From: Octopus sinensis
Taxonomy: Eukaryota
DNA: 64,000 bases
Reading direction: 5' to 3'
Assembly: GCF_006345805.1 (NCBI RefSeq)
Contig: NC_043013.1
Location: 38,750,001-38,814,000, forward strand
Part shown: positions 30,457 through 49,660 of the stretch, in pieces
How the letters are laid out: each line of letters opens with the position of its first letter
How positions within the stretch are numbered: the first letter of the stretch is position 1
Notes under the pieces: model-generated
Databases searched by the model: none
What the model saw: the letters and a program-made list of their open reading frames with translations, nothing else
What the model was told of the DNA's origin: nothing
Made by a program: the position numbers and the translations under genes

Positions 30457-30572
30457 CTTTGTCCCGGATTCTTGCAGTTTTTCTAGTATAAGAATTAAAA
30501 GACACACAGAGGTCACCAAAATTTTTTTCAACATGTGCTAACCGGTCTTGGACGAATTTTGAAGTAAATGGA
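30457..30572 (-). CDS. FAM92: FAM92-like copy A exon 2 (PFTSKFVQDRLAHVEKNFGDLCVSFNSYTRKTARIRDK)
   Basis: ttttccag acceptor, gtaagt donor, 116 nt. Peptide matches the FAM92 motif VEKHFGELC..F..Y.RKTARLRDK (recalled). Confidence 0.92.
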
Positions 30573-30666
30573 CTGGAAAACAAGAAACAAAAACAATAAT
30601 AATTGCTCCAAACATAGGCATAAGAGCAGATATTGTGGAGAAGGGGTTAATTTTTTATTCACTAGA

Positions 30667-31219
30667 TCAGGGGTTCTCAACCAATTTTTTTTATTTATCT
30701 ATGGACCCCCTTGATTACTATTTTATTCTTGTGGACCCCCACAGTCATTCAATGTTTAACCCTTTTGTTACTGTATTTATTTTGAGATGCTCTTTGTTTC
30801 TTTCAATTATTTTAAATATAACAAAGAGTTTAGTAAAATAACTTAGTTATCAATAAGCTAGTGTTAGGAACATAAATTGAGACTAAGCTTTGGTGAAAGA
30901 TTTTAATTCAAAACTTATGAAAACGAGACATTTGTACTACAGAGCCAGAGCCGGTTTCAGCCAGGTTGGTAACGAAAGGGTTAAAAACTAGAAGCTTCTT
31001 TCAAAATTCCTATTTTGTTTTCCACACATTAACTAGCATAGGTTGATCTATGTAAAGTGTCAGAGAAAGAAACCTAGCCCTTTCTTGCAATACATACCAA
31101 TGCATACATCTAAATCAAAATTTTTTCAGGGGCCCTTAATATACTATTGTGGGTCCCCAATTTATTATTTTGTTACATGGACCCCACCAATCTTATATAT
31201 ACCCTGCTTGAGAACCACT
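30667..31219. mobile_element. hAT/Charlie-like non-autonomous DNA transposon with nested piggyBac-type MITE (30760-30980)
   Basis: Outer ends cagggttctcaacc / gcttgagaaccactg. Inner element ttaa-ccctttt...aaaggg-ttaa. Related pieces at 151-369 and 9400-9715. Confidence 0.7.
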
Positions 31220-45239: not shown

Positions 45240-47120
45240 TGTCCATAGTTATCTTCTTTCTCTTTGATTTTCAAAGAGATATTCACATCAGTAGGACAAC
45301 TGATCTCTGTGATGGTACATACGTTTTTCTTATTTGTTCAAAACAACATCATCTAGCAAGTTATGTTTACACTCGACAAATGTTTTGATGGGAGTGTTCC
45401 ATCAGTATTTCTTGTGTAGATGTTTGCATAAGTATTCAATAACAAGGGAATTCTCTATATTTTTTCCACGGCAATCTTTTTACCGAATGGCATTTTATAT
45501 TGTTTTTGCGACAACGTCGTGCTGCTTAGCTGAGGTAGTACCTTGATGACATTTCTGGGCAACTGCTAATCACATGTGTGATGTCTTCCACAGAAATATG
45601 ACATAATCTACATTTTCTATGGAATCTTGGAGCTCCAAGGGCGTCGCTGTTTCTTTTGTTTATTAGCTATTTCGTAGCTATCTCCTGTTATTGCATTGCA
45701 AGTGCATAGGCTTCGAAGTGTGATGTGATTTAGCGGCCACCGAAGTGTGATGTGATGTAGCGGTCACGAGTTCAAAAGCAGCTTCGCTTCGTATCAATAT
45801 TATTGTCAAGGCGACGAGCTGGCAGAATAGTTAGCACGCCGGGCGAAATGCTTAGTGGTATTTTCATCTGCCGTTACGTTCTGAGTTCAAATTCCGCCGA
45901 GGTCGACTTTGCCTTTCATCCTTTCGGGGTCGATAAATTAAGTACCAGTTGCGCACTGGGGTGGATGTAACCGACTTAATCCGTTTGTCTGTCCTTGTTT
46001 GTCCCCTCTGTGTTTAGCCCATTCTGTAGTAAAGAAATAGGTATTCCGTCTGCCGCTACGTTGTGAGTTCAAATTCCGCCGAGGTCGACTTTGCCTTTAA
46101 TCCTTTCGGGGTCGATTAAATAAGTACCAGTTACGCACTGGGGTCAATGTAATCTACTCAGTCCCTTTGTCTGTCCTTGTTTGTCCACTCTATGTTTAGC
46201 CCCTTGTGGGCAATAAAGATTTAATATCAATATTATTGTCTTCAAGTCTTCGGGAAACATACCCATCTATGTTTTTGTTTATTGTTTATTCGTTTGGTTA
46301 TTTTTCGGCATTCTGAGAGCTCAACATCCAAGTCCTCTTTGAAGTATATTAGTCTGGTTGTTCTGGGATTGCATAGGAGGTCATCAGGAAAAGAGTGCTT
46401 CCTGAAGAGCTCGCTACTGACACGTAAGATATTGTTCTCTTTTACTCTTTTACTTGTTTCAGTCATTTGACTGTGTCCATGCTGGAGCACCGGCTTTAGT
46501 CGAGCAATTCGACCCCCGGGAATTATTCTTTGTAAGCCTAGTACTTATTCTATCGGTCTCTTTTGTCGAACCGCTAAGTTACAGGGACGTAAACTCACCA
46601 GCATCGGTTGTCAAGCGATGTTGGGGGAACAACACAGAGGCACAAACATATACACACGCACATACATACATACATATATATATATATATATATATATATA
46701 TATATATATATTATATATATATATATATATATATATATATATATATATATATATATATATATACATATATATACCACGGACTTCTTTCAATTTCCGTCTA
46801 CCAAATCCACTCACAAGGCTATAGTAGAAGACACTTGCCCAAGGTGTCACGCAGTGGAACTGAAACCGAAACCAGGTGGTTGGTAAGCAAGCTACTTACC
46901 ACACAGCCACTCCTACGCCTATTTCTCTTAAATTTTAAACACTAAATCAATGTTTTTAATTTTGTGCTGTTGTTTAGCAAGTGTTGTCTGAAAGGGAGAC
47001 TATACGGCATTTGAAGGCTGTCTATACTGATTTCAAGCCTCTAGCTCCTTCGTCCCTTCTTAGGTGGAGCCTGTCAACAACGCTATTTCTGTGAAAGTTT
47101 CCGGTTGAAGTTAGTATGTT
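45240..47120 (-). mobile_element. Old R4/NeSL-type RLE LINE remnant fragmented by SINEs
   Basis: Pieces in order: ILTSTGNFHRNSVVDRLHLRRDEGARGL (47000-47120), ...HRWVCFPKT (46242-46430), KCRLCHISVEDITHVISSCP..HDVV..EISCPTDVNISLKIKEKEDNYGQL (45240-45640). Confidence 0.75.
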
Positions 47121-49544
47121 GCGAAATTTAGGCGTAGGAGTGGCTGCCGGGTAAGTAGCTTGCTTACCAACCACATGGTTCCGGGTTCAGTCTCATTGCG
47201 GGGCACCTTGGGCAAGTGTCTTCTACCATAGCCTCGGGTCGAACAAAGCCCTGTGAGCGGATTTGGTAGACGGAAACTGAAAGAAGCTCGTCGTATATAT
47301 GTATATATATATATATATATATATATATATATAATGTGTGTGTGTGTGTGTGTGTGTGTTGTGTGTGTGTGTGTGTGTGTGTGTGTGTGTTTGCGTGTCT
47401 GTGTTTGTCCCCCCAACATCGCTTGACAACCGACGCTGGTGTGTTTGCGTTTCCGTAACTTAGCGGTTCGGCAAAAGAGACCGATAGAATAAGTCCTGGG
47501 GTCGGTTTGCTCTACTAAAGGCAGTGCTCCAGCATGGCCACAGTCAAATGACTGAAACAAGTAAAAGAGTAAACAGAACATAACAGTCTTAGCAGTTACG
47601 TCACCTTTAGATACAGCCTAGGTTATCTCCCTTTCACCCTCGTTATTGTGTAACTTGGATCTTTCATGGAGTTCGTTTATAAAACTCGGACATCATCATC
47701 CCAAATCGATTTCACTTGGTCTGTGATACAAACGACTGACACAGTGCTATAAAATTATTCCTTCTGTGCTATGACATTCTCTTCAGATATAGACATTTTC
47801 TTATTTTAAGGCTGTAAACTGGCAGAGTCGTTAGCGCGTCGGACAAATTGCTTAGCAGCAGTACTAAGTTTCTTGAATGTTCCGTGTTCAAATTCCACCT
47901 TTCATTCTTTCGAGGTCGATAAACTGAAACTGCTCGTCAATCGATGTGTCCCCATGGATCCTTTATTAATATTAGTCATCATCATCATTTAACGTCCGTT
48001 TTCCATGCTGGCATGGGTTAGACGGTTTAACTGAAAACTGATAAGCCAAGGTGCTTCACCAGATTCTGATCTGATATGACAAGGTTTATACAGCTGGATG
48101 CCCTTCCTAATGCCAACCACTTCGAGAGTGTAGTGGGTGTTTTTTATGTGCTACCGGCACAGGTGCCATCAACACGACACCACCATTGGCCACGACTACG
48201 GTCTCACTTGGTTTGACAGGTGTCTGCACAAGCAAGTCAAGTGAGACCGCAGTTGTGGTCGATGTCGGTGTCAGGTCAATGGTACTGTGCTGGTGGTATG
48301 TAAAATAAACACCCACTACACTCCCGAAGGCGGCGAACTGACAGAACCATTAGCATGCTGGGCGAAATGCTTAGTGGTCTGCTGCTATGTTCTGAGTTCA
48401 AATTTCGCCGAGGTCAACGTTGCCTTTCATCCTTTTGGGGTTGATTAAATAAGTACCAGTTACACACTGGGGTCGATATAATCGACTTAATCCGTTTGTC
48501 TGTTCTTGTTTGTCCCCTCTGTGTGTAGCCCCTTGTGGGCAGTAAAGAAATGAGAAACATTAGCATGCCGGGCGAAATGCACTACCCTTGTAGGTAGTAA
48601 AGGAATAGGTATTTCGCCTGTCTTTACATTCAGAGTTCAAATTCATATTGCTCCACTTCACTCGGCCATAGAAATGAGTTACAACATCAATGGTGCCAAG
48701 CTGTGTCAGCCTTTGCTTTTCTCTTGGATAACATCCGTGGTGTTGTGAGGGGAGGCTGGTATGCATGGATGACTGCTGGTCTTCCATAAACAACCTTGCC
48801 TGGACTAGTGCCTCGCAGGATAACTTTCTAGGAGCAATGCCATAGTCATTCATGACTGAAGGGGATCTTTACCCTTTAAACCTGGAATTAATCATCTGCT
48901 GCAGTGGTTCCCAACCAGGGTATATATAAGATTGGTGGGGTCTATGTAACAAAATAATAAATTGGGGACCCACAACAGTATATTAAGGCCCCTGAAAAAA
49001 TTTGATTTAGATGTATGCATTGGTATGTATTGCAAGAAAGGGCTAGGTTTCTTTCTCTGACACTTTACATAGATCAACCTATGCTAGTTAATGTGTGGAA
49101 AACAAAATAGGAATTTTGAAAAAGAAGCTTCTAGTTTTAACCTTTGTTCCAACCTGGCTGAAACCGGCTCTGGCTCTGTAGTACAAATGTCTCGTTTTCA
49201 TAAGTTTTGAATAAAAATCTTTCACCAAAGCTTAGTCTCAATTTATGTTCCTAACACTAGCTTATTGATAACTAAGTTATTTTACTAAACTCTTTGTTAT
49301 ATTTAAAATAATTGAAAGAAACAAAGAGCATCTCAAAATAAATACAGTAACAAAAGGGTTAAACATCGAATGACTGTGGGGGTCCACAAGAATAAAATAG
49401 TAATCAAGGGGGTCCATAGATAAAAAAAAAAATTGGTTGAGAACCCCTGATCAAGTGAATAAAAAATTAACCCCCTCTCCACAATATCTGCTCTTATGCC
49501 TATGTTTGGAGCAATTATTATTGTTTTTGTTTCTTGTTTCCCAG

Positions 49545-49660
49545 TCCATTTACTTCAAAATTCGTCCAAGACCGGTTAGCACATGTTGAAAAAAATTTTG
49601 GTGACCTCTGTGTGTCTTTTAATTCTTATACTAGAAAAACTGCAAGAATCCGGGACAAAG
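49545..49660 (+). CDS. FAM92: FAM92-like copy B exon 2 (expression status unknown)
   Basis: tttcccag acceptor, gtaagt donor. Exon sequence identical to copy A exon 2. Confidence 0.85.

Follow-up and report, generated by a model that had tools for sequence, protein, structure and literature searches.

The window analysed here is a 64,000-nucleotide stretch of the Octopus sinensis (O. sinensis) genome (CM016875.1:38,750,001-38,814,000; 38% G+C), and it contains a large palindrome within and upstream of FAM92A, a gene of the FAM92/CIBAR family of CBY1-interacting BAR proteins. A piece from the middle of the gene, which reaches from intron 1 into intron 5, occurs twice in inverted orientation around a unique spacer that carries the only start exon. 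The duplication precedes the separation of O. sinensis from Octopus vulgaris (O. vulgaris), the arms form a mosaic of converted and diverged stretches, and the second copy is truncated at both ends. The locus is an ordinary genomic palindrome rather than a novel arrangement in which two exon sets share a start exon. It is best explained, and probably correctly so, as an inverted internal duplicate of FAM92A whose copy B is a fragment that is kept like copy A by conversion between the arms, and we infer that copy B is not expressed as a functional product.

The proposed history is as follows. An internal FAM92A/CIBAR segment was duplicated, inverted and set upstream of exon 1. Copy A is the working gene: its exon 1 lies in the spacer, arm A carries its exons 2-5, and its exons 6-9 follow outside the arm. 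Copy B is a gene fragment. The arms exchange sequence repeatedly by non-reciprocal recombination, in tracts of up to ~2 kb. Purifying selection would act on A, and conversion of A onto B, together with the removal of harmful B-to-A events, would pass the constraint of A on to B; the exons of B would then look pristine though B is unused.

Layout of the inverted repeat and of FAM92A

Self-BLAST and a repeat search place two long inverted arms around a unique spacer of ~14.9 kb in contiguous sequence, which is the arrangement of a genomic palindrome. The window is gap-free (it contains no N) and features short interspersed nuclear elements (SINEs) and microsatellites. The exon coordinates and their flanks were placed by exact string search.

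15257..32628, minus strand: arm A (17.4 kb), with part of intron 1, all of exons 2-5 and 450 bp from intron 5; the FAM92A/CIBAR gene to which these belong is annotated and complete
47501..61942, plus strand: arm B (14.4 kb), a reversed copy of the same internal gene segment
32629..47500, no strand: spacer, with FAM92A exon 1 and its upstream region, rich in SINEs and microsatellites
34749..34780, minus strand: exon 1 (32 nt, MNRSGAEITS, phase 2), in the spacer, facing copy A, with no B counterpart
30457..30572, minus strand: exon 2 of copy A (116 nt)
24556..24680, minus strand: exon 3 of copy A (125 nt)
22666..22734, minus strand: exon 4 of copy A (69 nt)
15706..15807, minus strand: exon 5 of copy A (102 nt), with AGT = Ser at 15729
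49545..49660, plus strand: exon 2 of copy B, same as A
53279..53403, plus strand: exon 3 of copy B, same as A
55352..55420, plus strand: exon 4 of copy B, same as A, within a 1.4-kb converted tract
61394..61495, plus strand: exon 5 of copy B, with one B-unique nonsynonymous change, TGT = Cys at 61472

The duplicated segment starts ~2-2.4 kb upstream of exon 2 and stops 450 bp after exon 5, within an (ATT)n microsatellite. In copy B this segment is inverted and lies ~12.4-12.7 kb upstream of exon 1. The inverted repeat extends well past the coordinates given for it in the first-pass annotation of this DNA, and the homology of arm B to the O. vulgaris A locus reaches further inward, to ~47143, through a SINE that arm A of O. 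sinensis lost. BLAST blocks between the arms are 94-97% identical, and the overall arm identity is 96-97% with a mosaic distribution.

The first-pass annotation described a single start exon oriented toward copy A, a copy B with no in-frame ATG before exon 5, and 412 exonic nucleotides that differ at one position with all eight splice sites intact. All of this is borne out. No second copy of exon 1 was found in the window when up to 3 mismatches were allowed, nor by sensitive blastn of exon 1 with 300 bp on either side, and the first internal Met in the translation of exons 1-5 falls in exon 5. Exons 2-5 sum to 116 + 125 + 69 + 102 = 412 nt, in which A and B differ once (A at 15729, T at 61472; Ser to Cys), and every AG and GT dinucleotide is kept.

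The protein encoded by exons 1-5 is a member of the FAM92 family, with 113.6 bits against the Pfam FAM92 profile (PF06730; cut-off 23.6, E = 1.2e-32), and it covers profile positions 17-150 of 225. Its translation is 100% identical to isoforms X1-X3 of the O. sinensis "protein FAM92A", and the annotated proteins XP_029647064 and XP_036366384 are a 100% match to exon 1 plus the A exons. The O. vulgaris orthologue and an O. bimaculoides model (UniRef A0A0L8G445) both start with MNRSGAEITSS joined to exon 2, and exon 1 is therefore taken as the genuine first coding exon. A cuttlefish FAM92 protein starts with MNLS.

The annotated proteins run 180 residues further after exon 5. The annotated O. 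sinensis locus (L001), which is identical to the window over 1-44780 and runs past its start, places exons 6-9 at L001 52321-56937, 7.5-12 kb before the window start and on the A side only. An alternative exon is also found only on the A side, and thus the gene continues beyond arm A:

4523..4585, minus strand: alternative exon of isoform X1, downstream of exon 5

Copy B has neither the start exon nor exons 6-9, and its exons 2-5 stop at profile position 150 where the whole domain spans ~1-225. Copy B alone therefore cannot encode the FAM92 BAR domain. B is joined to unrelated sequence at both ends, and the outer end of arm B adjoins a degenerate, unclassified run of broken open reading frames that resembles a retroelement remnant and gave no Pfam hit. 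This element (62160-64000, plus strand) contains a CCHC-like motif (KCFLCSSESH), an RRM-like stretch and low-complexity runs rich in Gln, Thr and Pro.

The isoforms of FAM92A differ just past exon 5. Isoform X1 adds a hydrophobic exon of 21 residues, AQVIIFVFVLVESVNSWIT (4523-4585), and isoform X3 seems to take only the first 6-7 nt of this exon as a microexon. In isoform X2, exon 5 is 12 nt longer and ends at an apparent GC donor (AAG|GCAATG; 15691-15705, minus strand); this extension is identical in B. The VSSKAK form is probably the conserved one, since a cuttlefish FAM92 has it too. A rough tblastn probe with human CIBAR1 recovered exons 2-5 as well as a candidate "exon 6" at 12352-12426, which was spurious and is a repeat.

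Age of the duplication and conversion between the arms

The history of the arms was read from a three-way alignment of arm A of O. sinensis (sinA), arm B of O. sinensis (sinB) and the A arm of O. vulgaris (vulA; L002, OX597830.1). The O. vulgaris assembly is independent and based on Oxford Nanopore Technologies (ONT) reads (PMC10700109). Between A and B, 369 of the 13,922 aligned columns are substituted (2.65%), and there are 69 indel events in addition. The intron divergence is not a uniform 2-3% and runs from 0% over more than 1.5 kb to ~6-10% in some stretches of 150-250 bp. A two-state hidden Markov model (HMM) on the A-B mismatches cut the arms into seven segments, of which the following two bear on the age of the duplication:

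A 22395-20281: 57 B-unique, 3 sinA-unique and 20 vulgaris-unique changes
A 18151-15257: 86 B-unique, 16 sinA-unique and 14 vulgaris-unique changes

Across these two segments, ~3.8 kb, B is the outgroup to sinA and vulA. The A-B divergence there is ~4-5.5%, with 6-10% in short stretches, and the single-copy spacer differs between O. sinensis and O. vulgaris by ~1%, with a mean of 1.6%. Additionally, a SINE at the inner boundary is common to B and vulA and was lost in sinA, and B carries a deletion of ~1 kb that begins within a SINE. Taken together, these results show that the duplication is real and older than the split of O. sinensis and O. vulgaris. This split has been placed ~2.5 My ago (cited in PMC10700109). 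The palindrome is several million years old, and scaling a divergence of 5-8% against ~1.3% suggests, as a rough estimate, an age of something like 10-15 My.

One arm was also altered by a later insertion:

25047..26758, minus strand: Tc1/mariner-type DNA transposon, in arm A only (intron 2), present neither in B nor in the A arm of O. vulgaris

This 1.7-kb element features a TA target duplication, terminal inverted repeats of ~26 bp, and remnants of the Pfam domains HTH_Tnp_Tc3_2 and DDE_3 on a frameshifted open reading frame. Since arm B and O. vulgaris both lack it, its insertion postdates the species split and took place in the O. sinensis lineage.

The same segmentation gave three tracts in which the arms are nearly identical:

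Tract 1, A 27459-28475 / B 51162-52188 (plus strand): 1017 columns, 7 A-B differences; sinA-vulA 2.4%
Tract 2, A 22396-23777 / B 54310-55690 (plus strand): 1380 columns, 6 A-B differences; sinA-vulA 1.0%; holds exon 4
Tract 3, A 18152-20280 / B 56798-58926 (plus strand): 2129 columns, 5 A-B differences; sinA-vulA 1.4%; 27 vulgaris-unique differences

Together these tracts of 1.0-2.1 kb have 18 A-B differences in 4526 columns (0.4%), compared to 3.7% across the remaining arms. They also hold 57 vulgaris-unique differences (1.27%), which is about the interspecies divergence of the spacer (1.0-1.6%). The arms are thus alike where the orthologue differs, as expected of exchange after the sister species diverged, and on this alignment the tracts show arm-to-arm gene conversion after speciation. 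Conversion would have run from A to B in tracts 2 and 3, because the sinA-vulA distance there is at the interspecies level, and conversion from B to A would have given the A-B distance instead. The direction in tract 1 is ambiguous. The first-pass annotation had considered gene conversion focused on the exons. Conversion is demonstrated by these tracts, however the focus on exons is not, since the tracts consist mainly of intron and only one of them contains an exon; exons 2, 3 and 5 fall outside all three. In the innermost 4 kb of the arms (A 32628-28476), sinA, sinB and vulA are about equidistant at 3.6-4.9%, compared to an interspecies 1% in the adjoining spacer. This excess may reflect conversion from a putative B arm in O. 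vulgaris, or noise where SINE-rich sequence was aligned.

It had also been proposed that something preserves B, with the exonic identity to be judged against a full alignment. The outcome depends on the null that is used (P values of 1.6e-4, 0.018 and 0.26-0.06). A naive Poisson test on the arm-wide mean gives P = 1.6e-4 and was rejected as the differences are strongly clustered. A permutation test drew four intronic segments of the exon lengths 200,000 times, and at most one difference was obtained with P = 0.018. Flanks of 200 or 400 bp predict 6.0 or 7.2 A-B differences in the exons, compared to the 1 that is found (P = 0.017 and 0.006). For the orthologous exons of sinA and vulA the prediction is 6.0 or 5.0, and again there is 1 (P = 0.017 and 0.04). 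For B-unique changes in the 412 nt the expectation is 2.6 or 4.5 with 1 seen (P = 0.26 and 0.06). Flanks of 800 bp overrun the outer end of the arm near exon 5, and the test that used them was dropped. In general, the sequence around the exons is quiet.

These counts show that the exons are constrained in the A lineage, with no significant added constraint in the B lineage. The A-B deficit is about the same as the sinA-vulA deficit and is lost when only B changes are counted; constraint on A together with conversion is therefore enough. The proposal that something preserves B is favoured faintly by the lead of the exons over random intron pieces, and this lead does not carry over to the changes that belong to the B lineage.

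Alternative readings and the surrounding sequence

The alternative that survives best is that the B exons are in use. A first exon of their own in the spacer (near 42546-42577, plus strand) would be spliced to B exons 2-5 and on to a multicopper oxidase downstream. Exon 5 would lead from its phase-0 end into the oxidase, with either a chimeric protein or an extended 5' leader as the outcome; selection on this transcript would help keep the B exons. We regard such use of the B exons as unlikely, and it is a shade more doubtful that they were captured as the 5' part of a divergent chimeric gene in which the N-terminal 148 residues of the ciliary BAR protein are fused to, or lead into, the oxidase. 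If true, the palindrome would be a young case in which an inverted partial duplication gives rise to a new gene, and conversion from the parent would maintain the exons that were recruited.

The evidence for a chimeric gene comes from an O. vulgaris model of 812 aa that combines FAM92 with Cu-oxidase_3, Cu-oxidase and Cu-oxidase_2. The model starts on the opposite strand, 8.2 kb upstream of exon 1, and heads away from FAM92A; it occupies L002 1-1764 (OX597830.1 ~27,202,701-27,204,464, minus strand) and continues beyond the end of L002. Its first coding exon has a counterpart in the O. sinensis spacer:

42546..42577, plus strand: 32-nt ATG exon in the same phase as exon 1, with a GTAGAG donor; counterpart of the first coding exon of the O. 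vulgaris model (L002 1764-1733)

The open reading frame and GT donor of this exon are retained in O. sinensis in the phase of exon 1, the splice sites of B are all intact, and exon 5 ends in phase 0. However, 4 of its 32 bases differ from O. vulgaris, and its surroundings are the part of the spacer that diverges most between the species (3-8% vs ~1%). A scan of the plus strand from exon 1 to B exon 2 for an in-phase ATG exon with a GTRAG donor found none. The sole exonic change in B is nonsynonymous, the B lineage is under no significant constraint, and a degenerate, unclassified stretch of broken reading frames lies directly after B. The O. sinensis annotation has no gene in the 10 kb upstream of exon 1, an interval that covers the spacer to 44780, spans the start of the O. 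vulgaris model and stops short of arm B. Protein searches returned no long protein bearing FAM92, and the 812-aa product is probably hidden in a cluster of oxidases. Gene builders often join a stray gene fragment to the next gene. The proposed first exon at 42546-42577 is probably a gene-builder artefact, and so is the link from B to the oxidase.

Several observations nevertheless weigh against the view that copy B is an unused fragment. The permutation against random intronic segments gives P = 0.018 for the exons. Outside the long tracts, exons 2, 3 and 5 lie in blocks of 191 to 357 bp that are identical between A and B (191 bp for exon 2 and 357 bp for exon 3), and these blocks must reflect short conversion tracts or else a degree of constraint on B. 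The O. vulgaris annotation built a model through the B exons with transcript data in its pipeline (methods in PMC10700109), and expression of B is therefore possible. Additionally, the O. vulgaris sequence that was read directly covers its arm A and its spacer; we infer an arm B there from the FAM92 Pfam label of the opposite-strand model, since such an arm is the only place for the FAM92-like exons of the 812-aa product. An inverted internal duplicate of FAM92A that is kept like its parent by conversion is still the explanation that we consider probable.

It is highly improbable that A and B are two alleles, or that an assembly artefact such as a haplotig or a fold-back error has doubled a single exon set. 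Arms that are 96-97% identical might be taken for divergent haplotypes of a marine invertebrate, and the O. sinensis assembly is an early PacBio and Hi-C build (PMC10700109, table of assemblies). However, no gap interrupts the stretch, the unique sequences that adjoin the two ends of B differ, and B is the outgroup over ~3.8 kb, where A-B divergence is ~4-5.5% and interspecies divergence is ~1-1.6%. The ancestral SINE is kept in B and lost from sinA, and the independent ONT-based O. vulgaris assembly has a model with a FAM92 domain upstream on the opposite strand. Allelic status, which the first-pass annotation had offered as the trivial explanation, is rejected.

An equally remote prospect is that both exon sets make use of the one exon 1, whether because recombination of the arms inverts the spacer or because exon 1 is trans-spliced to B exon 2. 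The inverted arms have near-identical tracts of up to 2.1 kb, which is enough for homologous recombination, and exon 1 and B exon 2 are compatible in phase. Rare spacer inversions are known for the human Y palindrome P6 (PMC3723533). However, exons 6-9 lie outside arm A only, and an inversion would part exon 1 from them and make a loss-of-function allele, not a switch; of the two orientations, then, only one yields a complete product. The reference assemblies of O. sinensis and O. vulgaris agree in the orientation of the spacer, which holds no recombinase-like open reading frame. The suggested flipping of the spacer is thus unsupported. A product derived from B would end at position 150 of the 225 in the FAM92 profile, and trans-splicing of exon 1 to B would yield just over half a BAR domain.

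The open reading frames of the spacer are low in complexity, give no Pfam hits and are not credible as genes, and Rfam and tRNA scans of the window returned no matches. A local palindrome of ~320 bp (36143-36466, 92% self-complementary) lies off-centre in the spacer and is probably two inverted copies of a SINE or a microsatellite. A microsatellite-like block of ~1.06 kb at 10256-11314 consists of TA/CA-type units and is 73-77% self-complementary, and related blocks occur elsewhere in the gene (L002). The G+C content is 0.19 over 10001-12000, the region of this AT-rich block. Outside the window and away from the palindrome, an assembly gap of 100 N is found at L001 65116-65215, ~8 kb past the last FAM92A exon.

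The locus carries a caution for annotation, as a "pristine" second exon set beside a gene needs no exotic expression mechanism; inverted partial duplication with arm-to-arm conversion reproduces the pattern. It also provides a clean and datable conversion mosaic in a cephalopod, with a duplication before the species split and at least three conversion tracts after it. To our knowledge such conversion dynamics have hardly been described in cephalopods. The O. vulgaris annotation likely has a problem at this locus, in that a piece of FAM92 has been joined to a multicopper oxidase. Should transcripts bear the model out, it would instead be a young chimeric gene. The one paralogous variant of exon 5, with A in copy A (15729) and T in copy B (61472), is a ready marker for which copy is expressed.

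Comparison with known systems

In the Drosophila gene mod(mdg4), common 5' exons are trans-spliced to alternative 3' exons from the opposite strand, and the products are different complete proteins. The octopus locus is similar in that one set of 5' exons has candidate partner exons on the other strand. However, the opposite strand of mod(mdg4) supplies distinct terminal exons, and B duplicates the internal exons 2-5 with no terminal exons. A complete FAM92 protein would therefore not result from linking exon 1 to B.

The primate X and Y palindromes, including human P6 (PMC3723533, PMC8327919, PMC8981503), resemble the octopus locus in having inverted arms of more than 10 kb around a unique spacer. 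Both feature arm-to-arm conversion with multi-kb tracts and the potential for rare inversion of the spacer, and the octopus palindrome, like those of primates, has probably persisted across a speciation event. The Z chromosome of O. sinensis has been named "chr20" (preprint PMC10925132). The mammalian palindromes are sex-chromosomal; the octopus locus is in a mollusc, on CM016875.1 (59.4 Mb), which may or may not be the Z. The octopus arms are a 96-97% mosaic (0-8% divergence) and fall short of the >99% identity that marks the primate arms. Additionally, the primate arms carry complete testis-expressed gene copies, and the octopus arms carry an internal fragment of one gene.

Partial segmental duplicates of genes that are kept like their parent by interlocus gene conversion are a known class. 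The octopus copy shares the features of this class: it has lost both its 5' and its 3' end, its exons are closer to the parent than the average intron, and converted tracts alternate with diverged stretches. It differs in being placed head-to-head with the parent, immediately upstream of the parent promoter, and divergent transcription from the shared spacer could therefore reach the fragment. The locus is a textbook truncated segmental duplicate homogenised by its parent gene.

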